Shown: positions 5,770-64,000, counted from the stretch's first letter. The stretch: DNA of 64,000 bases from Macrostomum hystrix (GCA_950097015.1 CATNEN010000003.1:9548001-9612000); one strand, 5' to 3'. Translations and numbers: made by a program. Notes: generated by a model not told the origin, from the letters alone.

Positions 5770-6270
5770 AGAATTCTGAGACTTAGTCTAGGCCCTTTAG
5801 AATTTCTACTAAATCTTGACCAAATATTACTACGTCATTGTAGTGAAGCATATTGTTTATCTCCTCATTTTGTATAAAGGTGTCACTATGAAAGCAGTTA
5901 TTGAGAATTGAAGTGAGTAGATCTATGTACAAGGAAACTAATAATGGATAAAGAGGACAAGTCCTGTTGGACTCCATTTATGATGAGGTGGGCTTGAGTA
6001 GCTCTGTTCTCAAATATTTTTACTTGGAATTTGGCTTCTGAATACATGCTGGCAATCTTTTGTAATTTTGAGTTTTGAGTTTTGAGGTAGGTTCTGAGTT
6101 CTTTGAGTCTATTAAACAGAGTGGAGTGGTTTAAAATTTCAAAGGCACTTTTAAAATCAAACAAAACAAGATAAAGGTTCTCTTTAACTCTTGCAATATG
6201 ATCAGAGGTTTGGTAATCATCCTGTTCACTATCTGATTTTGGGACAAAAGCTTGAAATTTCAAATGTGTG
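5770..6270 (-). pseudogene. Degenerate LINE reverse transcriptase, frameshifted
   Basis: YLVLFDFKSAFE (DF.KAFD motif); IINGVQQ then a frameshift to CPLYPLLVSLYID (GVRQGCPLSPLLF motif); HYNDVVIF (decayed YADD). Confidence 0.85.
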
Positions 6271-36092: not shown

Positions 36093-38233
36093 TCAATTTC
36101 CATTTGCCCCACGTGGCATATTGTCATAAAACGACACCTGCCTGTCAATGTCTAATTCTTGCGTGATATTGCTGACAGCCATTGACAATTCCATGATGCC
36201 CATCGGAGAGGCCATGGAATCATCGCCCAACGCGTCGCTACTCTCTGGAAGCGGTGTTCCTGCGTGCCTCTGTCCACCGCGGCACCAACGACGATAGAAC
36301 CAATCGGTTAGCAGGTAGAGCAGCTCGACTAGTTCGAAGGCGAACGTCACGGTGACTCCGATTGTGAGGCTGCCAAGGCCGCCTAGACGACTCCACAGAG
36401 CGCTGAGGCTAATTTGCAATTTCTCACGGCTGACCGTGGTGCGGTAGTTCAGTCTGGCCACCGTGACCAGAGCCATGTTTCGCAAAGCGCGCTCTTCAAG
36501 CAGTTTGATGTGGCTCAGCTCTGGCGCCTCCAGCACTGACTCGAAGTTGGCGAAGCGAAGCAGCTCTTCACGGGCAGAGGAATGCCTGATTAGAAAAGTG
36601 TTCCGTTTTTATCGATAAGTTTATATTTATAAAGTTTTGCAGGGGCCATAATTAGACGACAATCGACCCGCAGCCTAGAGTGAGGAACTAGCACACATGA
36701 CATACACGCATAGCTAGCTCTAGGAGTCCTTGGCACAGACACACTCGGTGCGCTCGCTGTACGCGCTACTCCATCCCCTCCTTATTTCTCAATATTTCTT
36801 TCCATCAAAAATACTCACGCGGGATAATTTTCCAAGAGACTAAGCGCCTGTTCAATTTGGCTCAGCCAGTGAAACTGGCACAGGGTCGGCTCCCAGTTAG
36901 AGGATGACATGTGGCTCTCGTATTCGTGATGAGAGCAGCGCTTGAGGCACTTCCGATGCCCGACGCCGTAGATCAGGTCGGTGAGGTTCAGTTGTCGGAC
37001 GCAGGCCAGTCGATCGATGAATTCCTGCGGCTCGCTCTCATTGTATAATCCGCAGAAGGGTGCCTTGCGATCCGGAAGGCGCGGTCGGAGGTGAAAAGCG
37101 GATACGCAGCCACACTGCGCTAGAATGTACTTGCCGATGAAGCTGCTGATGCAGGCGCTTCTCGTGTAGCTGTATTCTTTGTCAACATCTCGCACAATGA
37201 CGTCCGAATCGTTCTTGCATTCTTCAAGCTGTCTAGAGTCCTTCTCAAACCGAATGGTTCGATAGCGGATCAGCGTCGATGTTTGCATCTGCACGCTGAA
37301 GCTCTCCTCGTCTAGCTGCGGATAAGTGCCCGGCTCGTGTAGCACAATGCGAAACCCGGCACCCTGAGTGAAGATGTTGTACACGTGTTCCTCCATTGTT
37401 TTAGACTGCCGACCAGAAATACTGATATTGCCTTTATCCAGCTCTTTGAAGTTAACGTTGGACAGAACTAGAGATACGTCGCTAACGCTGCTAGATTTGT
37501 TCAACGGCAGCTCGAGAGTGTAGCAGGTAAAATAGTCGGGGTGCTGAATTTTTCGCGCCTGAAAGTGGCAGGGTTCGGCGTGAGACACGCTAGGATTGAC
37601 CTTAGAGCTGTGCCGCATGTTGCAGAAGGGCATCAGCTCCTCCAGCGTGTGCTCGATGGCATCCAGCTCCGTCCTATTCAGCCGCTGAAAGTAGGTTGAG
37701 ACCCGGTCGCTGTGGAACAATGTCCCGGCTTCGCTTAGCTGACCGCGCCGAATATAGTGCCCGATGCCTTGGCGCAGCTTGCGGGAAAACAACGCCGGAC
37801 TTGGAAACCGGCCTGAGGACCACACGCGGCTAGCTCCGGACGAGAACGGATAAACTGAGCACACTGTTATACTGGGAAAGTGAGTCGCCTCGTTAACTCG
37901 ATCCTCTATTTGATAGGTGGTGTGGTACTCAAAGTACTCTCTTAGTAGATCGTAGGAGCCGTACGACAGAATGGCCGTCATGCTCAACAGGTAGAAGAAC
38001 CAATGCAGCCGTAGCACTCTGTGCTGGCTGGAGTAGCATTTTCTGAAGCCGCGGAGCGATGTGTTCTCAATGAAAGTCTCATAGGCACATCTGATCACAC
38101 CGGAAGCCCGACCTACTTCATCTTCTTCTTCTGTGGGCCCTTGCTGATCTCGGTTTGATCGTCGAACTGAACTACGCTGTCCGAACTTTCCGTCCCAGTA
38201 GCCAACTCGCAGCTTTTTCCCTCTCTGTCGCAT
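36093..38233 (-). CDS. DEG/ENaC (ASIC/FaNaC superfamily) channel subunit, ~635 aa; exons 38233-36819 and 36585-36093
   Basis: FIENTSLRG pre-TM1; TM1 (RLHWFFYLLSMTAILSY); FPSITVC; CYT; GFRIVLHEPG; Cys-rich thumb (YTRSAC...CGC...CLKRC); TM2 LGGLGSLTIGVTVTFAFELVE; phase-2 GT-AG intron. Confidence 0.92.
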
Positions 38234-40588
38234 TTGTTGCGATAGTGACCATAAGGTCTGGTTGAGACCGTGGAACAAAAATGCTAGTTGCAAGCACAAT
38301 ATAACAGGTGAGCGTTGAAAATTGTTTTTGACAACCTCGATCTATAGCGTCCATCGCCTACAAATACAACAGTTTTATTGAAATATCCAGACCCTGTTGA
38401 ACGGTTTGGGTCACACTCCTTCATACTTTATTCATGACGATATTGGGGAATTGATACTTGAAATTGTTATAGTTTTATTGGGCGTCAGCTGGTAAGAATG
38501 GGAATCCAATTGTTAAAACCAATGCATGAAATATAAAGAATTGAGCGCATCTATGTACAGCTGCAGCCTGTTAATTAGTAGCTATTCCCTATTAGTTGTG
38601 TACGTTAATTGTATAGCCCCATGCATTTACAACTAAAGCGCATTACACACGTAAATATTATATTATGTATTCTATCATATAAATTTAATTAGTCTAAATT
38701 GATTTAACAATTCAAATTTGTTCCTTTAATGAGTCGATCATTGCCACTTAACATGAGTAATTTATATAAAGAAACATGAGCAGTTCTGTCTAAGCTTTAG
38801 TTGATGCGCGAATCTTTGAATTAATTGCATATACAGTATATAAGCGAGGTTGCGCAAAAGTCGTTAAAAGCCGTATTATAAAACCTGTTCTGCAGAAGAT
38901 GACTTATCTTATTTAAATACAATGTAGTTTTAGTTTAACGTATAAATTACCGCACCATGGCAACTATTTGTATGTCAGTATGTCTTTGCGAGATCTGCAG
39001 AGATGAGAAGACCACACGTCCGGTGGGTGCGGGCAGATATATCAAAATGTTAATTTGTAAATTGCATCGGATTTTTATTTTACGCAGGACCAGCTGTTAA
39101 AACCACAAATTAAATTAATTAGCTCTTGAATACTTCATTACTATTGCTTTTTAGCTGCTTTTCGGTTGTTTTGACAGATAAATAAAGCTCAACTGCTCAC
39201 AACTTGACAAGCATATTTACTCTGAACATGCAATATTTTATTGGCGTGCAGGCGATTCGGAAATGCATATCACTTTGAAATTCGTTATCAAGTAAATTAA
39301 ACGTTATATAACTGAAACATTCTACAAAAACAATGTGTCTTCAATTCTGTTCTGTATCGAATTACAAAAATGGTCAATTTCACGTGCGCGCACGGCAACA
39401 TATAAATATTTTGGACTGCCAAGCTTAATACAAAAAAGCCTAAAGACGGCAACAATTCAGAAAAAAACTACGAATTTGGGCAAACCTTTTTGAAGGTTTC
39501 ATTAGTTATTTGTCATTAGTTAGTTGATATTCAGTCGTTTAGTAGTTATTCTATTTTTGCCCGTGCTAAAACAATAAAATATCAAAGTTATCGAGTTGAA
39601 GAAACTCGATAACTAACAGCTTAATAGTTTAATGCCCACAGGCTTTTTGGCCAATAAGTTCTGTTTTCACAAAGTTTTTATTTGAACTTTAAAGGGCTTT
39701 TGGGCATATTTTTTCTTTTAAACACGGTTATGTTTTAATTTGATAAAAGATTATTTTAATTTAAAATACATAATTTCAGAGAAACGCTCGCTCGTTGTCC
39801 TTAACTGTGGTTTGTCAACTAGCTTGGCAATACTTAAGTATGGCTAACTAGTACAGACAATGAAGATTACATAGTGAATAGACAGTGAAAAAAATCCACA
39901 CGCGTCGCACGTGTGGACGCGTCGCACAAAAGTTATATTTTTACTGATAGCTATTCGTCTGATTTTGTTCGCTCTATAAAATTTAAAGGTAGTCAATTCA
40001 GTCAATTAAAATTAAATAAACTATTTAAATTTAATACACAGACCTAGTCCAAGTCAAGTGATTGTGGGACAAAGTTGTGTGACTTTAATTTTTATCGCTA
40101 GGCTATTATAAGACTTTGTTACATCACACTACATTTTGTAGACTAGCTAGTTTTTATATGGAATAATCCTGGTGTGTAATTTTCATAATTTTACTCAAGT
40201 ATGTGATTTAATACGAGAATACGAAGTACATAAAAGCTATACTACATTACTTTACTATTGAGTCATTGACATTTAAAGCTAAACCCACTTGGCCTACTAA
40301 ATGGGCTTATGTTTTCATTTCCATCTGCTTCGTTCTTACAGTTAGAAAATGAAATTTAGTCTTATAATATTTAGCCAAAATGTATTTTGTGTTTTTTACA
40401 TAACAATTAATTGTTTTGTTTCTTTATAAAAAATTATCAACTACTAGCTAGCTTGTATACAGTCATGTCATTTAGCAATGTAATCAAATTAAGTTAAATT
40501 AATAATATATGTATTTTTATTACATACAAACCATGAATAATGTGTTATAGATGACTTTCATGACTTTTTTAATCTCTATTTTCAGAAT

Positions 40589-43500: not shown

Positions 43501-45601
43501 CCAGTTCGCGATCCCAACGATGCCCGAGTACTGAAAGGTATCCAGGTAGTGCGACTGAAAAACAAGCTGGGAACTAGGCAACTGCCAACTGCCGAGTTGC
43601 TTCTAGACGGTTGTCGAGCTCACCTGATTGGTCAGGTAGGTCGAGGCGTGGCCGAAATTTCCACAATGCTGCAGCTGACGAGGCTGCACAATGCTGTTCA
43701 CGCGGCTGGCGCACTCAGACGATTCAGCCAGCTGTGTCGGGATCACGCGAGGTGGGACATTGCTTCCTGTCTGCTAGATATACCTGCTTCTGTTCTATAA
43801 TCCCTCCACTCTCTGAAGATTAACTGCTTATCAATCTCATCCATAATCCAAGATTTGCGTTTGAAGTTCCACTAAATTCACTCCCAAGATCCACGATTTA
43901 ATCCTACCTTTTATCCCTCCCAGGAGCCGTTATTTAATCCCAAATATAATCCCTGCTTTGTCCTTTAATCCCACCTGTAAACCCTTCTTAGAAACGTCCT
44001 TTAATCCCATCTATAATCCCTTCTTACTTACGTCCTTTAATCCCACCTATAATCCCTTCTTAGATATGTCCTTTAATCCCACCTATAATCCTTTCCTAGA
44101 TCAGTCATTTAATCCTACCTATAATGCTTCCTAAGAACCGCCATTGAATCAACCTTGAAATACCTCCCAAGATACTTCTTACCCTCCACTGAAAACTTCA
44201 TCAACGTTTTTGCAGACAACGCCGCGCTTTCGGCCATAGAATCTCTGATTATCCGTTGCACGTTCGAGGCCTAGCGGAACTAGAAGTGCATTCCCGTGCT
44301 GCATGCCTGTTCGCTATGAACTACGCGGCCAGGCTGGGTCGAACTGAGTCGACAAAGTCGCAGTTGGAAGCCAGCGAAGACGATCGTCAACTGGTTCGCC
44401 TGCTGTCGCCGTTGTTGAAATTGTTCACGGCTAAACAGGCTGTTCGACAGGCTCAGGTAAAATTGAAGCCGCGGGCGTTCAAAGTAAAAATTATATCAAA
44501 TACCCGCTGCACACTTCACGACAGCTCCCAAACTAAATGACCGATTTTTTTGTAAAAGTCCACAATATGCATAAAAATGTTCTTCCCTATACAATAAACT
44601 TTCAAAGCCGGCCGACGTCAGCATCGTCGAGATTTTCAGCGATTGTTGTCAAAGACCCTGGTGACAAGGACAACTATCATTTCTCTGTATAAACGTCTAT
44701 ACCGAATCCATATTGGTTTAATAATATAACAATACACAAAATAATTAACAATTATAGCCTAAATTAAGCCGTAAGTACGTCCAGTGGCAGAGCCGCAGCT
44801 ATTGCACGGCGCATCTGAAGGCTGCGTACGGCTTTTCAGTCCATGGACTGGTGGGACGCCACACTCAACCTCAGCTACCCCAGCTGACGCTGGTACCCAG
44901 TTAATGCTCATGCTAAAGAACACAAATTGTTTCACTGAAGTCAAGAATCGAACCCCCGACCTTCAAGTCGTGAGTCCGACACTCTAACCACTAGGCTACA
45001 ACACCCTAGGCTAGTAGCTAAATATAAGTAACAATATCCCTTATTTTTTGTCCTCTAAAATCAGGAAGCTATGGAAATGTTCGGCGGAGTTGGCTACATC
45101 GAGGATAGCGGCATTCCGGCAATGCTGCGCGACGCCAACGTCCTGCCAATCTGGGAGGGCACCACGAATGTGCTCAGCCTCGATCTGCTTCGGGCTCTGA
45201 AAAAATCTCGAGGCGCCGCTTTGCCAGCATTCCGGCGCAGCGTTGAAGCCGCCTGCTCAGACGCCTCCAACGCGCCGGACGGGTTGAACCTAGCCCCGGC
45301 TGCTGATCGTCTCCTAGCGTCGACTAATCGTGTTTTAGAAGCTGCCTCCGAATCATCGGCCGATCAGTTGACTCACGCTGCTCGCGAGTTCGCCTACTCG
45401 CTCAGTCGGCTGCACTCGGGCGCGGAACTCCTGGCATTCGCCGCTGCCACCGGACATCCGGCCGATGCTGCTGCTGCTAGGCGTTGGTGCCTAGCTGGCG
45501 ATTTGGATCAGTTTGCTAGAATTGTGGCTAGTAACGAGGCCGGCAAAACTGATCTCCTATCTGCCGAGGAAGAGCGTCGTGTTGTTTACGAAGATTCGTA
45601 A
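40589..45601 (+). CDS. Acyl-CoA dehydrogenase, AidB/ACDH-11 type, ~629 aa; exons 40589-40777, 40892-41310, 41521-41646, 43374-43751, 44216-44456, 45065-45601
   Basis: CPLAMTDGAA; WTSGQWMTERGGGSDV; LHGFKWFSSA; RLKNKLGTRQLPTAEL; RRAFG; FGGVGYIED...RDANVLPIWEGTTNVLSLD (catalytic Glu retained). Phases consistent; 1890 nt. Confidence 0.95.
41680..43370. repeat. Intronic minisatellite, 32-bp units in two homogeneous blocks (switch at ~42770)
   Basis: Block 1: GAATAACCCGCACCCTGAACTATTGGATGGTA. Block 2: GAATAACCCACACCCTGAACATTCAGTTAGTA. Confidence 0.97.
43890..44150. repeat. Degenerate ~36-bp intronic minisatellite (TTTAATCCCACCTATAATCCC...)
   Basis: TTAATCCCA recurs at 44001, 44037 and 44073. Confidence 0.75.
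44465..44675 (-). mobile_element. Dispersed ~220-bp repeat (non-autonomous element), homologous to 56494-56725
   Basis: Reverse complement shares AGGGTCTT.GA.AAC.ATCGCTGAA.ATCTCGACGATGCTGACGTCGG...TTGAAAGTT...AAAATCGGT...GTTTGGGAG.T.TCGTGAAGT. Confidence 0.75.
44770..45006 (-). mobile_element. tRNA-derived SINE, family B
   Basis: Reverse complement: A-box TAGCCTAGTGG, B-box GGTTCGATTCT; 3' body shared with 23005-23275. Confidence 0.82.
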
Positions 45602-47827: not shown

Positions 47828-49890
47828 CTATCTACCCCTCATTACCTACTCAGCTTGATCTACCCCTCACTAACCTACTCAACTTGATCTACCCCTCATT
47901 AACCTACTCAACTTGATCTAACCCTCATTACCTACTCAACTTGATCTACCCCTCACTAACCTACTCAACTTGATCTAACCCTCATTACCTACTCAGCTTG
48001 ATCTACCCCTCAATAACCTACTCAACTTGATCTACCCCTCACTAACCTACTCAACTTGATCTAACCCTCATTACCTACTCAACTTGATCTACCCCTCACT
48101 AACCTACTCAACTTGATCTAACCCTCATTACCTACTCAGCTTGATCTACCCCTCAATAACCTACTTAACTTGATCTAACCCTCATTACCTACTCAGCTTG
48201 ATCTACCCCTCACTAACCTACTCAACTTGATCTACCCCTCATTACCTACTCAACTTGATCTACCCCTCATTACCTACTCAACTTGATCTACCCCTCATTA
48301 CCTACTCAGCTTGATCTACCCCTCACTAACCTACTCAACTTGATCTAACCCTCATTACCTACTCAGCTTGATCTACCCCTCACTAACCTACTCAACTTGA
48401 TCTAACCCTCATTACCTACTCAACTTGATCTACCCCTCACTAACCTACTCAACTTGATCTAACCCTCATTACCTACTCAGCTTGATCTACCCCTCACTAA
48501 CCTACTCAACTTGATCTACCCCTCACTAACCTACTCAACTTGATCTAACCCTCATTACCTACTCAGCTTGATCTACCCCTCACTAACCTACTCAACTTGA
48601 TCTAACCCTCATTACCTACTCAACTTGATCTACCCCTCACTAACCTACTCAACTTGATCTACCCCTCACTAACCTACTCAACTTGATCTACCCCTCACTA
48701 ACCTACTCAACTTGATCTAACCCTCATTACCTACTCAACTTGATCTACCCCTCACTAACCTACTCAACTTGATCTACCCCTCACTAACCTACTCAACTTG
48801 ATCTACCACCCCTCACTAACCTACTCAACTTGATCTACCACCCCTCACTAACCTACTCAACTTGATCTACCACCCCTCACTAACCTACTCAACTTGATCT
48901 ACCCCTCACTAACCTACTCAACTTGATCTACCCCTCACTAACCTACTCAACTTGATCTACCCCTCATGACCTACTCAACTTGATCTACCCCTCACTAACC
49001 TACTCAACTTGATCTACCCCTCACTAACCTACTCAACTTGATCTACCCCTCATGACCTACTCAACTTGATCTACCCCTCACTAACCTACTCAACTTGATC
49101 TACCCCTCACTAACCTACTCAACTTGATCTACCACCCCTCACTAACCTACTCAACTTGATCTACCACCCCTCACTAACCTACTCAACTTGATCTACCACC
49201 CCTCACTAACCTACTCAACTTGATCTACCACCCCTCACTAACCTACTCAACTTGATCTACCACCCCTCACTAACCTACTCAACTTGATCTACCCCTCACT
49301 AACCTACTCAACTTGATCTACCACCCCTCACTAACCTACGCAACTTGATCTACCCCTCACTAACCTACTCAACTTGATCTACCCCTCAATAACATACTCA
49401 ACTTGATCTACTACCCCTCACTAACCTACTCAACTTGATCTACTACCCCTCACTAACCTACTCAACTTGATCTACCACCCCTCACTAACCTACTCAACTT
49501 GATCTACCACCCCTCACTAACCTACTCAACTTGATCTACCACCTCTCGCTAACCTATACTTAACTTGATCTACCACCCCTCACTAACCTACTCAACTTGA
49601 TCTACCACCCCTCACTAACCTACTCAACTTAATCTACCACCTCTCGCTAACCTACTCAACTTGATCTACCCCTCACTAACCTACTCAACTTGATCTACCG
49701 TCACTAACCTACTCAACTTAATCTACCACCCCTCACTAACCCACTCAACTTGATCTACCACCCCTTAATTACATACTCAACTTAATCCACCCCTCACTAA
49801 CCTCTTCAACTTAATCTACCCCTCACTAACCTCTTCAACTTAATCTACCCCTCACTAACCTACTCAACTTGATCTACCCTTCAATCTACC
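47828..49890. repeat. 28/29/32-bp minisatellite (ACTTGATCTACCCCTCACTAACCTACTCA)
   Basis: Direct tandem repetition; alternating 28/29 units early, 32-bp +CCA variants late. Confidence 0.96.
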
Positions 49891-50926: not shown

Positions 50927-53900
50927 ATGGGCACCGAGGTTGAGGTGCAACTGCAAGAAGCTCTCCTGGCTATCAAGGTAGGAAGATGCTTTTTCAATCA
51001 ATGACCAGCTACCTCCTCTGTCTCATCTCTACCCCTTCATCTCCCCCCTGTCTCATCTCTTCCGCGTCTAATCTCTCCTTTGACTCAACTCTCCCCTGTG
51101 TCATCTCTCATTGTCTGATCTCTCATTGTCTTATCTCTACTCTGTCTCATCTCTCCCAGCCAGTCTCACCTCTCCCCAGTCTCATCTCGCTCCTGTCTCA
51201 TCTCTCCCCAGTCTCATCTCTGCCCTCTCTCTTCCTACCCTCATCTTCGAGTATTTTTAACATCAAGCTGATGTGAAAACGTGTGAAAATCAGTTGCTGC
51301 GTCACTGCCTTCTGGTCGCACAAAGCTTTATTTCTGTACGATATTATTTGACATTTCTGCTTATCCAGGATAAAGCCACGAGAGTTCGCTTCGGCGACAA
51401 TGCCCTGTTCCTCGAAGAGGCTGGCGAGCTACAGAAAGATCTGGAGAGTCAACTCTTCGAGTTGGAGAAGCAGATCTGCGAAGGTGTTCAGGTGAGAACC
51501 TCCTTCTGTTCATTTTTTCTAATCTGATTTCCTCGCTTTCTAACAGGTGTATCAACCAATACCTGTCTAACAGGTTTATCAACCAATACCTGTCTAACAG
51601 GTTTATCAACCAATACCTGTCTTACAGGTTTATCAACCAATACCTGTCTTACAGGTTTATCAACCTACCTGTCTTACAGGTTTATCAACCTACCTGTCTA
51701 ACAGGTTTATCAACCTACCTGTCTAACGGGTGTATTGAAGACCCTGTTTCGAAGAGGTGTATCGAAGTTTGGTAACTAAGGAACCATGCCATTCTTTATC
51801 ACATATATCATATTTTCTACCCGCTCATTATTTCTTATAAAGACGATAAGCAGCTTTCACTAAAAGGATATTTTTCTAAGAATAGAATTGTTTTCAGTTT
51901 TAGTATATTTGATGACTTTCAAACTCGCAGGGCGAGACGGAGGCCCGGCTGCTGAAGGAAAGCGAAAGCATCAAGGGCGAGATTCATCAGAACAAGAAGT
52001 GCGCGAGCTACCTTCAACGCATCGCCTGCTTAGAGGAGGATTTCACCGTGAGCTCATTTAAGAGGCTGCGTTTCTTAGAAACCCGTTTTCAGGATCAGAG
52101 AAAGAATAAATCATGCGCTACTAATTACCTCAAGCATAAATCGTTTCCGAAAAAGAGGTTTCCCTGAAACGACGTTGCCCAGAAACGAAAGTTTTCCCGA
52201 AAAAGGTTTCCCCGAAAGTAGGTTTCCTTGAACCGAGGTTTCCCGGAAAAGAAGTTTCCTCAGAACGAAATTTTCCAGGAAACTAGGTTTCTCCGTAACT
52301 AGGTTTGCCCAGAAACGAAAGTTTTCCCGAAAAAAGGTTTCCCCAAAACTAGGTTTCCCCAAAACTAGGTTTCCTTGAAACAATGTTTCCTCGATACGAG
52401 GTTTCCCCAAAACGAGGTTTCTCCGAAACGAGGTTTCCAGGAAACAATGTTTCCTCGATACGTGGTTTCCCCAAAACGAGGTTTCTCCGAAACAAGGTTT
52501 CTCCGAAACGAGGTTTCTCCGAAACAAGGTTTCTCCGAAACAAGGTTTCTCCGAAACAAGGTTTCTCCGAAACAAGGTTTCTCCGAAACAAGGTTTCTCC
52601 GAAACAAGGTTTCTCCAAAACAAGGTTTCTCCGAAACAAGGTTTCTCCAAAACAAGGTTTCTCCGAAACAAGGTTTCTCCGAAACAAGGTTTCTCCGAAA
52701 CGAGGTTTCTCCGAAACGAGGTTTCTCCGAAACGAGGTTTCTCCGAAACAAGGTTTCTCCGAAACAAGGTTTCTCCGAAACAAGGTTTCTCCAAAACAAG
52801 GTTTCTCCGAAACAAGGTTTCTCCAAAACAAGGTTTCTCCGAAACAAGGTTTCTCCGAAACAAGGTTTCTCCGAAACGAGGTTTCTCCGAAACGAGGTTT
52901 CTCCGAAACGAGGTTTCTCCGAAACGAGGTTTCTCCGAAACAAGGTTTCTCCGAAACAAGGTTTCTCCGAAACAAGGTTTCTCCGAAACAAGGTTTCTCC
53001 GAAACAAGGTTTCTCCGAAACAAGGTTTCTCCGAAACAAGGTTTCTCCGAAACTAGGTTTCTCCGAAACGAGGTTTCCCGGAAACGAAGATTTCCCGAAA
53101 ATAGGTTTCCCCCTTAAATAGGTTTCCCCGAAACGAGGTTTCCCCGCAGTCTCGCCAAACACTGTCCCTTCCCTCACCTACCGTCCCGCAGAAGCTGATG
53201 CACACGGTGATGGCCAGAGCCAAAGCCATGCGGGACAACCCACACGGCGACAAAGTCACCAGCCAGGTGGTAGCCGACTGCTGGAGTCAGGTGCAGCGAA
53301 TGTCGGACCTGACACGGGTGCACACCAAGAATGCGGCCGACTATTATCAGTTCTTCTTCGACTACCGGGACACCTTCATGCGGCTGAAGGATCGCTGGCA
53401 TCAGCTTGAGCACTGGCTCACCGCATTCTCGCCTAAGCCTATTGTGCGAGAGACTGATTCTATTAAAACCTTCATGCAAAACCAGCTCACTGAATTCCTG
53501 TGCCTTTGGCAGCGAGTTCAGACCGTTGTGGCCTCGAGTCGAAGGGTTGTGCCTGTGAGTTCTACCAGTGATATACTACTGCTGATAAGTAGTGGTTAAA
53601 TAATGTTGAATTAGCTAATACTTTTAGGTAAATCTAACATTATGATTCACTCAGATCCCTTCAGATCCCTTCAGATTCCTTCAGATTCATTCAGATCCCT
53701 TCAGATCCCTTCAGATCCCTTCAGCTTCTTCAGATCCCTTCAGATCCCTTCAGATCCCTTCAGATCCCTTAAGATCTGTTTAGATCCCTTCAGATTCTTT
53801 CGCATCCCTTCAGATCCCTTCAGATTCTTTCGCATCCCTTCAGATCCCTTCAGATTCCTTCAGATTCCTTCAGATTCCTTCAGATTCCTTTAGATTCCTT

Positions 53901-56900
53901 CAGATCCCTTAAGATCTGTTTAGATCCCTTCATATTCTTTCGCATCCCTTCAGATTCCTTCAGATTCTTTTAGATGCCTTCAGATTCCTTCAGATTCCTT
54001 CAGATCTCTTCAGATACCTTCAGATCCCTTCAGATGCCTTCAGATTCCTTCAGATCCCTTCAGATCCCTTCAGATCCCTTCAGATCCCTTCAGATCCCTT
54101 CAGATTCTTTCGCATCCCTTCAGATCCCTTAAGATCTCTTTAGATGCCTTCAGATTCCTTCAGATCCCTTCAGATCCCTTCAGATGCCTTTAGATTCCTT
54201 CAGATACCTTCAGATTCATTCAGAGCCCTTCAGATCCCTTCAGATCTTTTCAGTTCCTTCAGATCCCTTCAGATCCCTTCAGATCCCTTAAGATTCCTTC
54301 AGATTCCTTCAGATTCCTTTAGATTCCTTCAGATCCCTTAAGATCTGTTTAGATCCCTTCATATTCTTTCGCATCCCTTCAGATCCCTTCAGATACCTTC
54401 AGATGCCTTCAGATTCCTTCAGATTCCTTCAGATTCATTCAAATCTCTTCAGATCCCTTCAGATCCCTTTAGTTCCTTCAGATCCTTCAGATCCCTTCAG
54501 ATCCCTTCAGATCCCTTAAGATCTGTTTAGATCCCTTCAGATTCTTTCGCATCCCTTCAGATCCCTTCAGATCCCTTCAGATTCCTTCAGATCCCTTAAG
54601 ATCCCTTTAGATTCCTTCAGATTCTTTGAGATCCCTTAAGATTTTTTCAGATTCTTTCAGATCCCTTCAGATCCCTTCAGATCTATTCAGATTCCTTCAG
54701 ATCCCTTAAGATCCCTTAAGATCCCTTCAGATGCCTTCAGATCCCGTCAGATGCCTTCAGATCCCGTCAGATGCCTTCAGATCCCGTCAGATGCCTTTTG
54801 TCTTTTATAATTATTAATCTACGAGTATTTGTTTAACTCGTTAGCTATCAGATAATCACCTTTGACACTATTAAGTACTTAGACATAACTAAAATTCGCA
54901 CTTCCACCTACCTGTCTCAGGTGCAGCAGAGGCTGGAACCAACCCGGCAGCCCCGTCCAGCCCTCCTGCTGTGCCCATTCGAAAATTCCGAAGTCCGTCT
55001 GGATGAGGGCGCCGAGGTGACTCTTCTGGACAATGCCGACAGCCTTCGGTGGCGCGTCTCGGCACAGAATGACGACGGCCAGACCGTGGCCTTCGACGTT
55101 CCATCCATTATGCTGTGGCTGCCACCACCAGACATCAGCGTGACGGAACTGGCACTCAAGTAAGGGGAGGGAGGCTTTTAAGCAGTTGGCCAATTATCCC
55201 CATTAATCCCATTTAGTTCATTCACATATTTCAGAGATTCCGACTGTTGCTAAATGATCCCCTTAGTTGGTAAATAATCCCCTCAGTTAGGAAATTTATC
55301 TCCTTAGCTGGTAAATAATCCCATCAGTTAGGAAATTTATCCCCTTAGTTAGTAAATAATCCCATCAGTTAGGAAATTTATCCCCTTAGTTGGTAAATAA
55401 TCACCTCAGTTAGGAAATTGATCCCCTTAGTTGGTAAATAATCCCCTCAGTTAGGAAATTTATCTCCTTAGCTGGTAAATAATCCCATCAGTTAGGAAAT
55501 TTATCCCCTTAGTTAGAAAATAATCCCATCAGTTAGGAAATTTATCCCCTTAGTTGGTAAATAATCACCTCAGTTAGGAAATTTATCCCCTTAGTTGGTA
55601 AATAATCACCTCAGTTAGGAAATTTATCCCCTTAAGTGGTAAATAATCACCTCAGTTAGGAAATTTATCCCCTTAGTTGGTAAATAATCACCTCAGTTAG
55701 GAAATTTATCCCCTTAGTTGGTAAATAATCACCTCAGTTAGGAAATTTATCCCCTTAGTTGGTAAATAATCCCCTCAGTTAGGAAATTTATCCCCTTAGT
55801 TGGTAAATAATCCCCTCAGTTAGGAAATTTATCCCCATCCCCTGGATGTCAAGGCGGAGGGGCCTGTGTGTGCTCATAGTCAGCGAAATCTTTCGAATTG
55901 GCTTCTCTGAATCTGTGGTCGAAAAAATCACTGCCTCAGTATCTATGGACGGTTAAATTAACAATAGCACCGAATCGAACTCCAAACTGCTCGGCAGACT
56001 CGAAGAGAAGTTCCTCTCCCTCTGGGGCAGCTCGGCGGCGCGCTTTCAGACGGTGCTGTGCGAGTACCTCACCCTGCTGTTCCGCCACCTATCGGCGCAC
56101 GACTATGCCGAGTTTGAGAGCCCCGAACAATGGCAGCTACTCAAGCAGGAGGTCCACAATCTGTTCGGCGACGACGATCGCTTCGAGTCGGTAATGCAGA
56201 CGCTGGCGCACTTGGACCGGCGCAATGACCCAGCTAAGCGCGGCTCCAGGAAGCGTGTACTACTAAAGGAGGCCGAGATTGTTCAACTGAGAAGCATGCT
56301 AGCCAAGCTGGAGTCGCACATCAAGTACTGGGAGTCGTTCAGGCGCCAGTCTCTAGCTGTGCGCGGCTCCGAGTACTGGCTGACTGAGCTTGACTGCTCA
56401 AACCCGGTTCTGCACAACTCCATCGCCCTGCTGGAGTGAGTGCTTGTACACTGAGTATTTTTTTATCCAAAAATTTCTGTCCTCATAATGTTTGTTGTAC
56501 TTGTCACTAGGGTCTTCGATAACTATCGCTGAATATCTCGACGATGCTGACGTCGGATGGCCTTGAAAGTTAGTTCATCGTAAAGGAAAGAAAATGGTGA
56601 TCCATATGGTGGCCTTTCACGAAAATCGGTTTTTCGGTTTGGGAGTTATCGTGAAGTAGGCAGTGGGTATTTGAAAATCCCCAGTGATCTTCCCCCCGGG
56701 GTAAACTTCCAGCCACGGGGCTACGCTTGTAGCATTTATTCTATTATTTTCTTGTTTAATATAATTTCTATATAATCTTCTATCATCATTTAAATATTTC
56801 GTTGAGCTTGTAATTCTTGGTTACATCTAAGGCATGGTTTTATCCGTAGAAAATTATATTATTTTGTTGAAAAATGCGTCTGTGGCAGGACACTGCAATC

Positions 56901-59900
56901 CAGCGGCCAGGAGCAGTTGGAGTCACTCATTGCCAAGCTCAACACCTGGCGCATTAGCGAAGCTGCCGAACAACGTCGACATGTGCGGAAACTTCGTCGT
57001 CAGGAGGTACTCGTGGCGTCGCGTACCGCTGGCGGCGATGCTGTCGCCGACCTGCTTCAGTTCCAGCTGCCGTCGCAACGCACTCGACAAGCCGATTTCA
57101 ACGAGGCGGCCGCGGTCAGTCTACATCAGATCGTCGACGAGGCGCACTGGAGCGAACTGTCGTCAGCTGCTTCGTCGTCCGTCCGCGGCAGCGTAGCAGG
57201 CGACGGCAACGGCCATCAGTGGCTGCGATCGCGCGGACTTCAAACGGCCCGGACTGGCACTCGCGAGGCGGCGCTGCAGACCACGGAGCGCGGCCACGCT
57301 GAGCACGCGACTCAGGCACAAATTCCGGCCAGCCATCACAACCATGGCATTCAGGCTGGCTACGCCACCGTCGAGTCCAGTGTTGCCGCTCAGAGGCCAG
57401 TAGCCGCGGATCACGCCAGTCAAACCACGGCAGACGGTGGTCTGTCTAGCTCGGCAGTGTCTCAGCGTCTGGTCACGGAGCAGTCTGGCAGCCAGTTCGA
57501 TAGCCAACGAGTCGAGCACGGTGTACAGACACGGTACACCACTAGTGACACGCTGATGCTGAGTAGCCGCGCCGAAGCTTCGCACTCTGGCACCCAGTTC
57601 AGTCAGACGGAGGGTCGCGAGTACGCCATACAAACGAAGCCGGACACTGGGGAGTCGAGCGTGTTCTTCCAGAGTGTGGCGGTTGACCGAAGCCAAAGCG
57701 TCACCGATCACTCTATTCAAACGTCTCGAGTGCTAAAGGACACGGCGTTGGAGTTTTCGGGACCAAAGATTGTCGAAATCGACTTAGATGAGGACTGGCA
57801 GACAGAGAGAAAAGTTCGCGCGGTTAGCCAGCCTGTCGATAATACCGACAGCGTCGATCCGTTGAAGCGCTTGACAATAGAGCAGCTTAGAGACGAGCTC
57901 TACCAAAGGCTCGTCCTGATTGACAAGTGCTGTCAAGCTGGATTCAAAGCGCCTGTTCGTGACATAGACACCCAGTTTGTTATCTTCCAGTCAGATAAAG
58001 ACTTGACTGCCAAACTGGCTTCCTCTGTAACCGACTCGAGCGTTCAAGCGTCGTCTAGGACAACAGAGGGTCACACCCAGTATGTACTTTTCAAGTCAGA
58101 TAAAGACCTATCGACAATGCTAACTCCAACAATGCGCGATACCGGGCTGCAGGCTTCTAGATCAATGACAGAAGGTCAAACGCAGTACCTGTTGTTCCAG
58201 TCTGACAAAGACCTTACAGCCCTGATAAGTCCAGGAGTTAGAGACGCGAGCCAGCAGGCTTCAAGAACTACTACTGAGAGCCAGGTACAGTACGTGCTAT
58301 TTCAGTCCGACAAAGACCTATCGGCACTCGTGACTAGCGAGACTCGAGATGCCAGCCTTCAGGCCTCAAGCCAAACCAGAGAAGGACAGGCACAGTACAT
58401 TCTGTTCCGGTCAGACAAGGACCTGAATACAGTGATTAGCCCAGTTAAGGATGCCAGTCTGAAAGCTGGCAGTGCTACAACTGAAAGTCAGGTTCAGTAC
58501 GTGCTGTTCCAGTCTGACCAAGATTTGTCAACTATTTTGTCTCCTGCAGTTAGAGACGCGAGTCTTCAGGCATCGGCAACAACTCGGGAAGGACAGGCTC
58601 AGTATCTATCGCAACAGGCCGACAAGTACATGAGCGCGCATTTCACACCGACTGTCAGAGACGCCAGCCAACAGGTGTCCACTGCAACCAGAGATGGACA
58701 GGCGCAGTACATCCTATTCCAGTCAGACAAGGATCTGAACGCTCTCATGGCTCCACAACTGAAGGACGCCAGTCTTCAAGCTTCGAGCCAAACAGCGGAC
58801 GGCCAGGCTCAGTACATCCTGTTCCAATCCGATAAGGATCTGGCGACTGTGTCCACCGTTAAAATGCAAGACGCCACAATGCAATCGGCGTCAAAATCTT
58901 CGGACTCTCAAACTCAATTCGTTTTGTTCCAGTGTGATTCAAACGTTAGACCCGTGGTTAAGTACTCAGACTTCAGTGCACAGGCTAGAAGCCTGACTGC
59001 TGACACACAAGCTCAGTACATTGTGGTCCAATCTGACAAGGATGTCAGTGCGCTTGCAGTTGGAATAAATGCCGCTGTTAGTAAAAATGCATCTGGAGCC
59101 TCTACAGATCAAGCCTCACAATATCTTCTTTTCCAAGCCAGTAAGCAGCTATCCGCATTCGTAGAGTCAGTGACCACTGAAACACAGGCTGCTGCTGACG
59201 CCAACGACAAGGAGACACAATTTATTTTGTTCAGCGCAGAAAATTTGAAAACTGAAAAGCCTCAGACTCGGGATTCGGAGACTCAGTTCATACTATTCGA
59301 GTCGAATCCGACACTGACCTCCAAACTAATTGGTCGAGACGCCCAGTCGCAGACAGTCAAACTAAAGCACGAGTACCTAGTGTTCCACACGCCACAGGGT
59401 GCTTCTGCAGCAACTGCAACTTCGCCGCTCAGACAAGCGGACTCGGCGGCGCAGTACCAGGCACCTGGCGTAGATCGGGAGGACCAGACTGCCGCAGAGG
59501 ATTTGTCTGACGCCGAGACCCAGTGTGTTCCGAGACTGATGAGAGACAGCCAGGGCGGTTATTGCCTGGCTCTGAACCAGGCTGATGCTCTCATTCGAGG
59601 CAAGCAGGTTAGTGAAGCGGAGGCCCAGTCTTACCTGACTCGCATGGCCGATGGTGTTGTTGTGGCTCGAGTTGCTAAAATGGAGACAAGCGACTTCCAG
59701 CAACAGGTGCATGGTAGCCGCAGTCAGGTTGGAGGTCTCAGAGATGCCGGATGCCAGTTTGAACTGTTCTCATCCGACAAGCAGGTAGCAAATTGCATCC
59801 TCAGCAATGCGTCTCAGGCTACAGCTACAGAGGAGGACGTCTTTTCAAAGTTCGCAATTTTCGAAAGCCAACCCAAGCTGGAGATTACTCGGCCTAGGCT

Positions 59901-62900
59901 TCTGAAGGATGCCAGCGGCCAGTATTACCTGTCTTCAACTGCTCAAGGAACCAGCCCCATACCCGGAAGGTTGATTGCTGATTCTCAGGTGCAAACGGTA
60001 CTACAATCATCTGACCAAAATATTGTGGCCAGAGTCACAGAAGAAGCAATCGTTCCACTAACTAGTTACGCGGCTCGGGCAGCCTTCGTGGACCAACCGA
60101 AGCCGCAGGTCAGTGAGATTTTTACGCAGTACGACCTGCTTACTCGAGATCAAAGCCTGGCAGTCAGCTTCGGCTCCTCGTCAGCGGAGGCGTCAACGCA
60201 GCCACAAGTTACAAGCGATTCGATGGCCCAGTACCTGGTGTTCACAACTGACACATCTAGCTCAACCAGTCAGCCAGATCTTCGACAAATGGCAATCAAC
60301 ACCGAGGTGGCACTAGTGAAAGATTCCAGTGGCCAGTTCTTCCTTGGCAGCAGTGATGGCTCTGTTTTGATCAGAGGTACTCAAGTAAGTCCAGCAGAAG
60401 TGGTGCACCATTTAACTAGCTCGGAAAATAGCATTGTTGTTATGGTCAGCAAAGAAAGCGCCGAAGTTAACACTGAAAGCGGAAGTGATCTCGTTGACGT
60501 TGCCACCCAGTACCTGATGTATTCGTCCGACAAAGATGCTAGCGTGGACACCATCAAGAGCTCAATGAGCTTGGCCCAGAAGGCATGCGTAGAGTCGAAA
60601 CCCGTGTTCCAGCCTACGCTACTGCGAGATAGCTCAGGGCAGTACTACCTGAACACAGCTAATTCAAACGTTGCAGTCCAGGGAGTTTTCGTAACTGAAT
60701 CGCAGGCCCGTCAGTGCTTGGCTACTTCAGAGAAAAACATTGTCGCCAGAATAGTGACCGAAACGCGAGACTTCATGGGACAGACGGTCCGCATTGTGTC
60801 GCGTGAAGCCGTAACTAAGGACTCGAGCAATCAAAGCGATAAGGTCCTGACAGAAGTCGATACGCAGTACATGCTGTACACGTCTAGCAAGAGTTTAGAG
60901 ACTGATCTTCCTAAGCAGAGTGTGGCGAAAGAATTCGCGATGCAAACCGAGCAACGAAGCGCAGATGCAACCGTGTTCCAATCGAAGCTGATGAAAGACA
61001 GTTCCGGGCAGTACTACCTCTACAGCTGCGATTCTAATGTAGCGATCGCCGGAAAGATGGTTTCCCAATCAGAGGCCAGACATTATTTGGCATCGTCGGA
61101 GAAAAATATTGTAGTTCGAGTATCCGACACCATGAGCGACTTTTCAACTCAGACGCATGAAGTCAAGCAGTCCGCATTCCTGGAACAGAAAGCCCAGAGC
61201 AGCAGAGAACAGAGAGAGTCACAGACACAATATGTCCTTTTTTCCTCTGATAAGAGTCTCTCTGCCAATTTAACTTCTGAAGTTGCCGTTCAGTCCGCAG
61301 ACACTGTTGACAATCTTGTTCCCAGACTGATGAAAGACAGTTCCGGACAGTACTTCCTGTGCAGTGCTGACTCTGGTATGGCTGTGGCAGGAACCCCCAT
61401 AGCGGAGTCGCAAGTAAAGAATTTCTTAGCTAGCTCTGACAAAAACATCGTAGCTAAAGTAATTACTGACTCAAAGGATTTTTCCAGCCAAACTGCTCAG
61501 CCAGCTGAAAGATCTGAAGGTGGAACTCAAAGCGGAGAGATCTTGACGGAGATGCAAACTCAGTACGCTCTGTACTCATCGAACAAGAGCCTGATGGTGG
61601 ATTTCAGTGCAGCTACGGAAGATTTCTCCACTCAAACGGCGTCAAGAATGTCTGCGAGTAGCGCAGTCGTGGCGCCAGTGGTGATGCGAGACAACTCGGG
61701 CCAATTCTACCTGACAAGTGAAGACTCGAGCGTCCGAGTTTTCGGAAAAGTTGTCACAGAAGCGGAAGCCATGCGACAGCTTAATACTTCGGACAACAGC
61801 ATTGTAGCTCGAGTTGTAAGCCGAGTCAGTGACTTCACGTCTCAAACTGCTCTAGATGAAAGTCGGCGCCAAATGGTATCCAGTGAGCAACAATATGAGT
61901 TGTATTCTTCCAGCAAATCGATTGCGACTGCCGACATTAAAAGCTCGGAGGAATTCGGCGCGCAGGTAGCTATGACATATACGGACTCAGCGGTATCCCA
62001 GGCCAAGCTGATGAAAGACAACTCGGGTCAATTTTACCTTGTAAGCTCAACTGCTGATGTAACGGTACGCGGTGAGTCGGTGACGGAGGCTGAAGCACAA
62101 TACTATCTGGAAAGCTCTGAAAAGAATATTGTGGCTCGAGTGATAAGCGAAGGTAGAGACTTTTCGACTCAAACAATGTCTCAATCACGCGCCACGCAAA
62201 AGGAGAGCAGTACACAGAGCAGCAGAAGTGAACTGACTGATGTACAGGCTCAGTATGCCCTGTACTCTTCAAGCAAGGGCCAGACAGTGGAGCTCATCAA
62301 ATCTTCAGAGGATTTCTCAACACAGACCCGGATTGCTAGTGTCCACAGTGGTGTCGCGAAGCCGAGTCTTCTGCGGGACAGCGCTGGTCAATACTATCTA
62401 GCCAGTCAGGACTCGAAGGTCAAGGTTCAGGGACGAGTCGTCACGGAGTCTGAAGCGCGAATGCACTTAAGCACGTCAGAGAAAAGTATCGTAGCTAGGA
62501 TAATTACCGATGTTCGCGATTTCACGACCCAAACTGTTTCTGAAGATGTTGAACAGGTCATAATCGCGGAGAGACAGCAGTACGAGTTGTACTCTGCCAA
62601 CAGAGACCTATCTGCTTTAGCAAGCAACAGTGAGGATTTCGCAGTGCAGGTGAGGCATGATTCTGCCGATATGGCCAGCCAGTTCCAACCCAAGCTAATG
62701 CGCGATAGCTACGGACAATATTACCTTTCCAGTGCAGATAGCAACTTGATCATTTCGGGCCAGCCAGTATCAGAGACTCAGGCCAGAAGCTACTTGGCCA
62801 GCTCAGACAAGAGTATTGTTGCCAGAGTTAGCAGTGAGACTCGCGAATCTACCATGCAAACCGTGCCGAAGACAAAGCCAGAGCTGAAGCAGACTGGAAC

Positions 62901-64000
62901 ACAGAGTGGCAGCACACTAGTCGAGGTGGATACGCAATACTCCCTCTACTCATCTAGTAAGAGCCTGACGGCGAATGTTATAAAGACATCGGAAGAATTT
63001 GGCACTCAAACTAAGACAAGCCTAAAGGAGAGCACATTCGTCCAGCCAAAATTGATGTGCGACAGTGCTGGACAGTACTACTTATCTAGTGAAGAGTCAG
63101 GGATGATGGTTCGAGGTCAAATTGTAACAGAGTCCGAAGCCAGGCATCACTTGTCGAGTTCCGACAAGAGCATCGTAGCCAAGGTGGTCAGTGAGACCCT
63201 GGACTTTGCCTCACAGACCGCCATTGAGAGCAGTAGCACCAAAATGCGGTCAGCTCGCGGACCACTACGCGACGTTCAAAGTGAATTCGTGTTGTATGCC
63301 TCCGACAAAAATTTGTCGACAGACGTTGCTACTGGTGAGTCCATGGCTGTTTTTCTCCAGACAGTGGAAACACGCGACGAAGGCACTCGCGTTCAGACGC
63401 AAGGAAAATCAGCTAGCGCTCTCGCCGGCTCCAGGGTGATGGTTGATGCCAGCGGGCAATACTTCCTAAAGACATCCAACTCCGCTACTCTTGTTCCCGG
63501 TGTCGTCGCATCTTCATCGGAGGCCAGAGCGGCACTAGAGAGTTCCGACAGCAGAATTGTTGCTAGGGTGTTTGGCGATGGGTTGGACGTCTCATCACAG
63601 ACGACTACAGCTGTCGCCTCAGCCCAAAGCGTCAGTACCACAAGAATGAAAGATGTTAGCACCCACTATGTCCTCATGACCTCATCGCACAATGTTTTTA
63701 GTCAGACAGAAGAAAACACCGCTACAAATTCCATGTGTCATAGTCAGGAAGAAGAGGTTGAAACAATTGTTCAAGTGTCCCAGGCACCGCTTCAGATGGA
63801 AATGACTGAACAGGTACACAGAGACACACAGGTAGCTGCTATGATGCACGATACTCACGCACAATACTTCATAGCCAGCTCAGAAGCATGCACTTCTCAG
63901 ACTGAGAGATTTGAAGCCTCGGGACACGTGCAAGCTCAGGTTGGAATGGAGTCGAGGACAGAGAAAGTGAAGGTCGACACAGCTGACTTCCAGTGTCAAA
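50927..64000 (+). CDS. Very large plakin-domain (spectrin repeat + SH3) protein with a repetitive xQT-rich tail, >2800 aa, 3'-incomplete; exons 50927-50977, 51369-51491, 51931-52047, 53192-53554, 54921-55159, 55998-56435, 56889->64000
   Basis: HTKNAADYYQFFFD (plectin HLKENAAYFQFFSD) and plakin SH3 LLCPFENSEVRLDEGAEVTLLDNADSLRWRV...VPSIMLWLPPPD...LE...LW. GT-AG phases are consistent. The frame starting at 56890 was open wherever I translated it, up to the window end. Confidence 0.85.
51538..51732. repeat. Intronic minisatellite, 26-27-bp unit (TAACAGGTTTATCAACCAATACCTGTC)
   Basis: About 7 tandem units in plakin intron 2. Confidence 0.9.
52140..53148. repeat. Intronic minisatellite, 16-bp unit (GTTTCTCCGAAACAAG)
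   Basis: Direct tandem repetition; each unit holds a GTTTC-tcc-GAAAC mini-palindrome. Confidence 0.96.
53650..54800. repeat. Intronic 10-bp satellite (AGATCCCTTC)
   Basis: Direct tandem repetition in plakin intron 4. Confidence 0.95.
55255..55836. repeat. Intronic minisatellite, 41-bp unit (ATCCCCTTAGTTGGTAAATAATCACCTCAGTTAGGAAATTT), a dimer of ~20-bp subunits
   Basis: Direct tandem repetition in plakin intron 5. Confidence 0.95.
56494..56725 (+). mobile_element. Dispersed ~220-bp repeat, second copy
   Basis: Homologous to the reverse complement of 44465-44675. Confidence 0.72.
57960..59340 (+). repeat. Coding repeat type 1: ~35-aa (105-nt) units, consensus EGQTQYxLFQSDKDLxxxxSPxVRDASLQASxxT
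   Basis: QYxLFQSDKDL-like motif near 57970, 58075, 58180, 58285, 58390, 58492, 58597, 58702, 58807 and 58912, then degenerate copies; codons are diverged, so the repeat is conserved at protein level. Confidence 0.9.
59520..63690 (+). repeat. Coding repeat type 2: 12 units of ~109-138 aa, core PKLMKDSSGQYYLxSxDSxVxVxGxxVTESEARxYLASSEKNIVARV
   Basis: DSSGQYYL-like cores near 59545, 59908, 60322, 60628, 60997, 61336, 61690, 62017, 62377, 62704, 63061 and 63445. Confidence 0.9.

Follow-up and report, generated by a model that had tools for sequence, protein, structure and literature searches.

The 64,000-nt stretch of the Macrostomum hystrix genome analysed here (GCA_950097015.1, CATNEN010000003.1:9548001-9612000; "the window", with positions counted from its first letter) carries at its 3' end a gene in which a plakin head is joined to a giant repetitive tail encoded by one exon, exon 7. 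We show that the locus is a genuine macrostomid flatworm gene, present as a single copy and transcribed, with a predicted protein of ~7,800 aa made of a 444-aa head and the exon 7 tail. A short glutamine-anchored core recurs along the tail and resembles the sites read by the dynein light chain LC8 (DYNLL). Our tentative explanation, based on the sequence, is that D-x-x-[TSIV]-Q-[TV] cores situated in variable linkers may dock LC8-family dimers, which would pair two tails in register.

On the + strand, a frame is open from 56806 to 63999 (2,398 codons) without a stop in the window, and it was missing from the listing of open reading frames (ORFs) because it runs off the window edge. Followed into the next 28 kb of the contig, this frame ends at a TGA at window-equivalent position 78958, so that exon 7 comprises 7,356 codons from its first full codon at 56890 to the stop. 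RNA contigs from four public runs were compared over 55900-61800, and the RNA support comes from one study: contigs of ~13.7 kb from three runs (X2-X4) align without a mismatch to 55998-56435 followed by 56889-61800, skipping 453 nt at a GT..AG joint between exons 6 and 7 and revealing no further internal joint in the covered part of exon 7 (to 61800). Given the spliced joint, these contigs are transcript assemblies and exon 7 is therefore expressed and spliced; the contigs are long enough to extend to about 69,100. The donor (GA/GTGAGT at 56435/56436) and the acceptor (cag/G at 56888/56889) preserve the reading frame. The first-pass annotation, made from the window alone, had proposed a single exon of more than 7.1 kb from 56890, absent from the ORF track, and both the uninterrupted frame and the spliced contigs bear this out. 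Exon 7 is the last exon of the gene, with an AATAAA about 70 nt 3' of its stop and no more plakin exons in the 19 kb past it, where only minisatellites and opposite-strand genes were found. At the other end, the transcript contigs start about 200-250 nt 5' of the ATG at 50927 (in transcript coordinates), the position at which the head had been proposed to begin, and the gene models of Macrostomum lignano begin at the same methionine. The exons are:

50927..50977, + strand: exon 1, start of the coding sequence (MGTEVEVQLQEALLAIK); ATG and GT donor; N-terminus shared with M. lignano P0001/P0003
51369..51491, + strand: exon 2, spectrin-repeat-like helix; AG/GT borders; colinear with the M. lignano protein
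51931..52047, + strand: exon 3; AG/GT borders; colinear with the M. lignano protein
53192..53554, + strand: exon 4, SR4-like spectrin repeat before the SH3; desmoplakin 3r6n residues 160-271; AG/GT borders
54921..55159, + strand: exon 5, plakin SH3 domain; Pfam SH3_10 (PF17902); plectin 3pe0 and desmoplakin 3r6n
55998..56435, + strand: exon 6, last spectrin-like repeat of the head; exact cover by spliced contigs; GTGAGT donor
56889..64000, + strand: exon 7, the giant terminal exon as far as the window edge; stop codon at window-equivalent 78958-78960; 22,072 nt in all

The head is encoded by six small exons with canonical borders, which were searched singly, with the M. lignano proteins serving as a spliced proxy. 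Profile searches agree with the earlier proposal of a spectrin-repeat/SH3 plakin fragment ahead of the giant exon: 54837-55160 matches Pfam SH3_10 (PF17902) with an expectation value (E) of 8.5e-13 and 48.6 bits, against a gathering cut-off of 22.8, and the exon 5 SH3 is the top SH3_10 match of the genome. The stretches 53105-53596 and 54837-55160 gave weak but colinear matches to desmoplakin 3r6n and plectin 3pe0, and the M. lignano orthologue aligned to desmoplakin 3r6n over SR4-SH3-SR5 (E 3.6e-13). Spectrin repeats with an embedded SH3 of the SH3_10 type, a feature of the plakin family, are found in the head, and by sequence the gene belongs to that family by its head only. It differs from desmoplakin and plectin in that only this ~444-aa head is recognisable, whereas coiled-coil rod and plakin repeat domains were not detected.

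For the C-terminal plectin repeats, PF00681 had no match in the tail (E <= 1) nor in the M. lignano proteins, and a genome-wide PF00681 scan placed all matches on contigs C39, C2 and C1 and none on the contig of this gene. We noticed that open frames at C39:9406001-9416000, of 1,316 and 1,217 aa, encode plectin-type repeats of the canonical kind, largely as near-identical 100-aa (300-nt) double repeats (SLD..G.VTDPRTGE..S.DEA..). No central coiled-coil rod was recognised, as AlphaFold2 (AF2) models of tail zones A and B (described below) lack long helices and Pfam is blank, with no dedicated coiled-coil predictor run. An N-terminal calponin-homology (CH) actin-binding domain was not found: the transcript contigs begin just 5' of the ATG and the upstream 50 kb consists of unrelated genes, and therefore the gene has no CH domain. 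Spectrin rod, EF-hands and GAR were likewise not found in the 19 kb past the stop, where GAS2 and EF-hand hidden Markov models (HMMs) were not run, so that of the spectraplakin features examined neither the CH domain nor the downstream rod, EF-hands and GAR is seen. Where other plakins have a coiled-coil rod, plectin repeats or a spectrin rod, this gene has the tail, as had been proposed for the coiled-coil rod and plectin repeats within the window, and the gene ends with it.

Self-similarity reveals the tail to be a mosaic of repeat zones with regular periods of 35, about 115, 88 and 47/94 aa, and Pfam has no match anywhere in it. Its composition is S 12.5, E 9.5, A 9.4, V 8.8, T 8.7, Q 8.2, P 2.4 and G 3.2 %. 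The zones are:

56890..57924, + strand: zone 0, tail residues 1-345; the end of the last helix, then low complexity with [DE]H[GA][IVTS]Q[TA] motifs 29-35 aa apart
57907..59325, + strand: zone A, tail residues about 340-812; 13-14 repeats of about 35 aa (RDASLQAS...EGQAQYILFQSDKDL)
59527..63819, + strand: zone B, tail residues 880-2310; 12 units of 102-138 aa
Past the window, + strand: tail residues 2311 onward; repeat periods 51, 88, 146 and 47/94 aa

Each zone B unit opens with a mini-domain of ~50 aa (LMKDSSGQYYL..G..VTESEA..L.SSEKNIVARV), followed 5 residues on by a DF[ST][ST]QT core and a linker of variable length; the second part consists of a TQYxLYSSxKSL element, a second core of the form [ED][DE]F[SGA][TV]Q[TV] (EDFSTQT-type) and a short spacer. 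Within the genome, zone B repeats are confined to this gene. In the C-terminal third (window-equivalent 71900-77700, tail residues about 5000-6950), a 47/94-aa repeat with SQA/SQV anchors was observed, with the consensus SVETxYSLRLxDxxSQ[AV]S..A.V....E....ES.[FI]K and seemingly related to the zone A element.

AF2 models, built on shallow alignments (9 and 4 rows, that of zone B consisting of paralogous units) and with a mean predicted local distance difference test (pLDDT) of 46-48, offer a first view of this mosaic. In two zone B units, the mini-domain is modelled as strand-strand-strand-helix-strand (pLDDT 60-72), TQYALYSS as a strand, and everything except the mini-domain, including the motif segments, stays below 50; six zone A repeats gave a regular alternation of strand and helix (pLDDT about 48; predicted template-modelling score, pTM, 0.42). 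Neither of these low-confidence models has a fold neighbour (best Z 3.2; no Foldseek match at E <= 0.001), and the ESM Atlas returned no usable match, with low recognition. In a charge-hydropathy analysis, zone 0 sits on the boundary line and zones A, B and F plot on its folded side; only 19-34% of windows in zones A, B and F lie on the disordered side, with Pro at 1.4-2.4%, Gly at 2.4-3.8%, and ILVM plus aromatics at about 25-28%. Therefore, the tail is not a plain disordered chain, zone B alone holding 12 mini-domains of about 50 aa. We infer that structured modules (35-aa strand-helix repeats, ~50-aa mini-domains and Q-Y-x-L-[FY] strands) alternate with poorly conserved linkers of variable length.

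The published anchor rules for LC8 place Q at 0 and mid-sized T/I/V at -1 and +1, with no bulky residue at -2 and no Pro before the anchor (PMC6607443), and from them we drew a rule-based core, [DESTNH][^P][small or polar][TIVS]Q[TV], the counts of which were compared with composition-preserving shuffles. The whole exon contains 69 such cores against 10.2 +- 3.4 in shuffled sequence, and the part in the window 21 against 3.5 +- 1.8; with D/E at -4, the counts are 47 against 3.8 and 17 against 1.1, respectively. Asp at -4 from Q is enriched 3.5-fold. Other Q-anchored forms are likewise in excess across the exon (TQT: 19 vs 4.5 +- 2.1; [TSVIM]Q[TV]: 102 vs 37.4 +- 5.7; xQ[YF]: 73 vs 32), in agreement with the earlier expectation that Q-anchored motifs exceed the shuffled level. 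The cores of the window are:

57409..63834, + strand: 21 LC8-like cores from a regular-expression scan with shuffles
Q codons of cores 1-11, + strand, starting at 57421, 57526, 57631, 57718, 58282, 58489, 58909, 59350, 59992, 61150, 61489
Q codons of cores 12-21, + strand, starting at 61633, 61843, 62170, 62323, 62530, 62647, 63007, 63214, 63598, 63829

All fourteen motif strings quoted in the first-pass annotation are present in the translation, whereas its tally of more than 50 LC8 motifs in the window is too high, having taken in off-consensus QY and QA elements. We consider that only about 20 candidate sites in the window, and about 69 in the exon, would fit an LC8 reading. The QY, QF and LQA/QA elements, among them the DASLQA, GQAQY and TQY classes, are probably better read as structural, because Tyr, Phe or Ala at +1 occurs in none of the 79 validated LC8 binders (PMC6607443 Table S4) and because these elements are conserved as longer blocks within regular repeats.

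Comparison with M. lignano allows the cores to be separated from their surroundings. A profile-free search with a 1,200-aa zone B query against 1.84 billion representative proteins retrieved one cluster only, composed of M. lignano hypothetical proteins annotated as "Desmoplakin SH3 domain-containing", and a search with the head only found no relatives beyond the same cluster. These proteins (PAA53624.1, PAA75311.1 and PAA83991.1; P0001-P0005) are orthologues sharing the head and zones 0, A and B, with tail identity of ~70% over the first 3,000 residues, but they are uncharacterised and represented by truncated gene models (2,482-4,042 aa). Around the cores, identity is 0.78 for the Asp at -4, 0.91 for the Q and 0.84 at +1, against 0.28-0.56 in the flanks. 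In zone B, the DFSTQT hexamer reaches 0.82, compared with 0.39 in both the preceding spacer and the following variable-length linker. The QY class is conserved beyond its anchor, at 0.66-0.80 out to +5. The same rule is satisfied at the aligned M. lignano position in 26 of the 31 cores lying within the first 3,000 residues of the tail (the 21 window cores among them), and the class can be kept despite changes in 2-4 of the six residues (DHASQT/EHGIQT, HRDTQV/NKSTQV, SFGTQT/NNSVQT, SREIQT/NIEVQT). The zone 0 sites appear in M. lignano as EHGIQT, DHGVQT, EHAIQT and DHAIQT.

A second plakin-SH3 gene, at C34:5587001-5607000 (5.587 Mb), provides an independent comparison. Its downstream ORFs of 2,259 and 1,470 aa contain 34 and 21 rule-based cores against 3.9 and 2.6 expected (55 against about 6.5), and are built from near-identical 80/251-aa super-repeats that each carry DTTTQT, TVEVQT and DMSTQT cores, DFASQT being also present in the tail. 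BLAST found no similarity between this tail and that of exon 7. The M. lignano orthologue of the C34 gene, P0006, likewise combines SH3_10 with cores (DIATQT, DTASQT, DFSSQT) in differently amplified repeats. The C34 gene and P0006 thus resemble the exon 7 gene in having a plakin SH3 head followed by giant ORFs dense in D-x-x-[TS]-Q-T cores, while the C34 tail is unrelated and its repeats are recently amplified and near-identical. Other plakin-head tails of similar S/T/Q content contain 0-1 cores per 1,756-5,472 aa, and therefore the core density is not a by-product of composition. Because the core is conserved relative to its flanks, is kept in M. lignano at most aligned positions and recurs in the unrelated C34 tail, we take it to be under selection as a motif.

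The likeliest reader of this conserved six-residue core in the linkers (D/E-x-small-[T/S/I/V]-Q-[T/V]) would be an LC8/DYNLL dimer or a flatworm paralogue. The genome has three intronless genes for canonical 89-aa LC8, which differ at a few residues and which we take to be nearly identical to the vertebrate protein, together with at least 36 Dynein_light (PF01221) matches, many of them single intronless ORFs; the expanded dynein light chain family expected by the first-pass annotation is therefore present here. Asp is often found at -4 of LC8 motifs, where it makes the sole conserved non-anchor hydrogen bond (PMC6607443), and validated binders come close to the cores of the tail (BSN AEFSTQTP, AMOT RDCSTQTE, WWC1 LDVSSQTD and Snph QERAIQTD; PMC6607443 Table S4, which lists 79 binders and 32 non-binders). 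Among known multivalent partners, ASCIZ/ATMIN has 10 motifs in the same Table S4 and 7 in the fly protein (PMC10046861), and KANK1 L2 accommodates at least 15 LC8 dimers (preprint 10.1101/2025.07.16.665182). Like these, the tail repeats a Q-anchored motif of eight residues in which Asp occupies -4 and T/I/V occupy -1 and +1, and a parallel duplex held by LC8 dimers would be the expected outcome, here predicted from sequence. Unlike them, it has 3-5 times more candidate sites, 29-128 aa apart with folded modules between, in a host chain that is not clearly disordered. A complex modelled from two copies of LC8 and two of a 36-aa EDFSTQT fragment, folded without alignments and without controls, scored 0.00 and 0.01 for the interaction prediction score from aligned errors (ipSAE), and counts neither way.

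If the cores do dock LC8, each dimer would clamp the identical site on two tails, and the paired, in-register tails would form a long, segmentally flexible ladder or cable anchored by the plakin head. Short, uniform linkers between adjacent sites are a requirement of known LC8 rods such as those of KANK1 and ASCIZ (preprint 10.1101/2025.07.16.665182) and are lacking here: neighbouring cores are separated by 29-35 aa in zone 0 and by 39-128 aa in zone B, where mini-domains intervene. Given this spacing, the LC8-stiffened rod proposed by the first-pass annotation is unlikely by analogy, and a flexible, cross-bridged ladder or cable is more defensible.

Several observations weigh against LC8 docking. 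First, only two matches to the strict ELM pattern, [^P].[KR].TQT, were found across the exon, both of them outside the window, so that of the scan suggested earlier only the relaxed result is positive, the TQT-type anchor with permissive flanks expected of an LC8 client being found in the rule-based cores. Second, position +2 of the cores is not the preferred D/E/P and its conservation is 0.28, and the zone 0 sites resemble documented non-binders (VDRSIQTV, LDTSIQTE, EAKSIQTS; PMC6607443 Table S4). Third, the wide core spacing and the intervening domains are unlike known LC8 rods. Fourth, the evidence for disorder at the core sites is mixed, with pLDDT < 50 and variable linkers on one side, and borderline or folded charge-hydropathy and low Pro/Gly on the other; with this low Pro/Gly and folded-side charge-hydropathy, the motifs could be strands of a folded repeat. 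Finally, a D-x-S-x-Q-[A/T/V]-S element, often with Ala at +1, seems to be an ancestral part of the repeats in all zones.

The strongest alternative, which we nonetheless regard as rather unlikely, is a fibrous repeat protein that folds by itself: the D-x-S-x-Q-[A/T]-S and x-Q-Y-x-L-[FY] elements would be strands or helices building a rod alone, with no role for LC8, and the LC8 likeness would be a by-product of a beta-prone S/T/Q-rich repeat. The folded-side position of zones A, B and F, the regular repeat periods, the strand-helix alternation modelled in zone A with TQYALYSS as a strand, the presence in all zones of a common element often bearing Ala or Tyr at +1, and the conservation of the QY class well past its anchor all fit such a construction. 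However, both AF2 models are of low confidence and without a fold match, and the linkers that hold the DFSTQT-type cores differ in both length and sequence, an unusual setting for core strands. Moreover, the motif class is kept while its residues are replaced, and the same class recurs in the C34 tail without detectable homology.

We find it improbable that exon 7 is instead an extremely diverged plakin-repeat exon of the Shot/VAB-10A type, in which the zone B mini-domains would be degenerate plakin repeats (beta-hairpin plus first helix) with spacers between them, the tail would bind intermediate filaments or another cytoskeletal polymer, and the TQT cores would be incidental or secondary. 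The attraction of this idea lies in the position and logic of the gene, which match the shot exon of 10,497 nt with its 33 plakin repeats separated by 7-128 residues and a poorly conserved second helix, the C. elegans equivalent of which encodes an alternative C-terminus (PMC2173965). Both the giant Short stop isoform and VAB-10A have, as here, a plakin domain followed by one very large exon of spaced repeats in a protein of the 8,000-residue class, and the large exon forms the C-terminal end in the worm. In addition, the mini-domain is modelled as hairpin-strand-helix-strand; by eye, it shares G-x-x-hydrophobic-[ST]-x-x-E-A with the canonical repeats of this genome; and, with a plectin-repeat HMM built from this genome, one third of the mini-domains lie beyond the 95th percentile of the scores given by shuffled decoys. 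Yet the mini-domains as divergent plectin repeats are unsupported by either direct test: hhalign gave a probability of 3.9% and in a different register, and HMM scores of at most 5 bits compare with 11.3 for the best decoy. Pfam Plectin is blank in the tail and in the M. lignano proteins, the genome-wide matches lie on other contigs only, and zones 0, A and C-F are without such an element. The exon also differs from that of Short stop in being twice as long (22 kb vs 10.5 kb) with lineage-specific repeats, and the gene differs from both in having no CH domain, recognisable plectin repeats or detected downstream spectrin rod, EF-hand and GAR. Both this alternative and the self-folding repeat can be compatible with partial LC8 docking.

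PIKK-type (phosphatidylinositol 3-kinase-related) kinases and transglutaminase would be possible enzymes, no result here pointing to them, and the conserved -4, -1 and +1 residues are not known to be a requirement of either. That the S/T-Q cores are modification sites, whether SQ/TQ clusters for such kinases or transglutaminase glutamine donors as in involucrin/envoplakin, is in our view very improbable, since dense and conserved [ST]Q in accessible linkers would suit it but many cores carry I or V at -1, which are not phosphorylatable, and the conserved Asp at -4 and Thr/Val at -1 and +1 are what LC8 reads (PMC6607443).

Beyond the exon 7 and C34 genes, we observed at least five more SH3_10 loci (C38:25.06 Mb, C38:23.11 and 23.13 Mb, C39:10.046 Mb, C7:1.126 Mb), which precede giant open frames (1,756-5,472 aa) with unrelated repeat tails and mostly few LC8-like cores; the tail at C38:23.13 Mb has 19, mostly of the EASVQV type. 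In sequence terms, the SH3_10 loci with giant tails look like an expanded family of plakin-head proteins.

Other features of the window were noted in passing. Within intron 6, 56488-56682 is a high-copy interspersed repeat, with a summed contig depth of 570-740 compared with 21-45 in the flanking exons, and from either end of it dozens of different contigs continue into unrelated sequence. The minisatellites that lie 5' of the gene or within its introns (47830-49883, 51539-51735, 52146-53146, 53651-54797 and 55257-55836) have periods of 29, 27, 16, 10 and 41 nt in or near the gene; the 16-nt minisatellite is open in all six frames and gives rise to spurious ORFs of 224-313 aa, and the 29-nt one accounts for a GC skew of -0.8. 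Neighbours at 9500-46000 include an ELMO-like gene (ELMO_ARM, PH_12), an RRM protein (RRM_5/RRM_10), an amiloride-sensitive channel (ASC) on the minus strand at 36818-38341 and an acyl-CoA dehydrogenase C-terminus at 45059-45598.

Plakins are universal linkers of junctions and the cytoskeleton and, to our knowledge, every member described so far is built with a coiled-coil rod, plectin repeats or a spectrin rod. The locus described here joins a plakin head to a 7,356-residue tail of different construction, so far only in Macrostomum, and our literature search found nothing linking plakins to LC8, nor on Macrostomum plakin-head proteins. Extending LC8 docking further, the macrostomid plakin-head giants (the exon 7 gene and at least the C34 gene) might be hyper-multivalent clients of LC8-type light chains, each chain offering 50-70 sites, several times the present record. 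A hub protein would then take over from the coiled-coil rod, and the expanded dynein light chains would serve as structural rivets, pairing such cables and tuning them in the cytoskeleton of the epidermis or of muscle attachments; we consider this broader scheme speculative and, as a whole, unlikely. Should LC8 indeed dock at the cores, no known LC8 client would come near the multivalency of this protein and its paralogue, the current record being the at least 15 dimers on KANK1, and the flatworm expansion of dynein light chain genes, so far unexplained, would gain a concrete cellular job. RNA interference, in situ hybridisation and transgenesis are established in M. lignano, and the LC8 idea is therefore directly testable. 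Even without LC8 binding, the locus would remain a clear case of a 22-kb coding exon that is transcribed, and of a structural protein whose repeats turn over rapidly.

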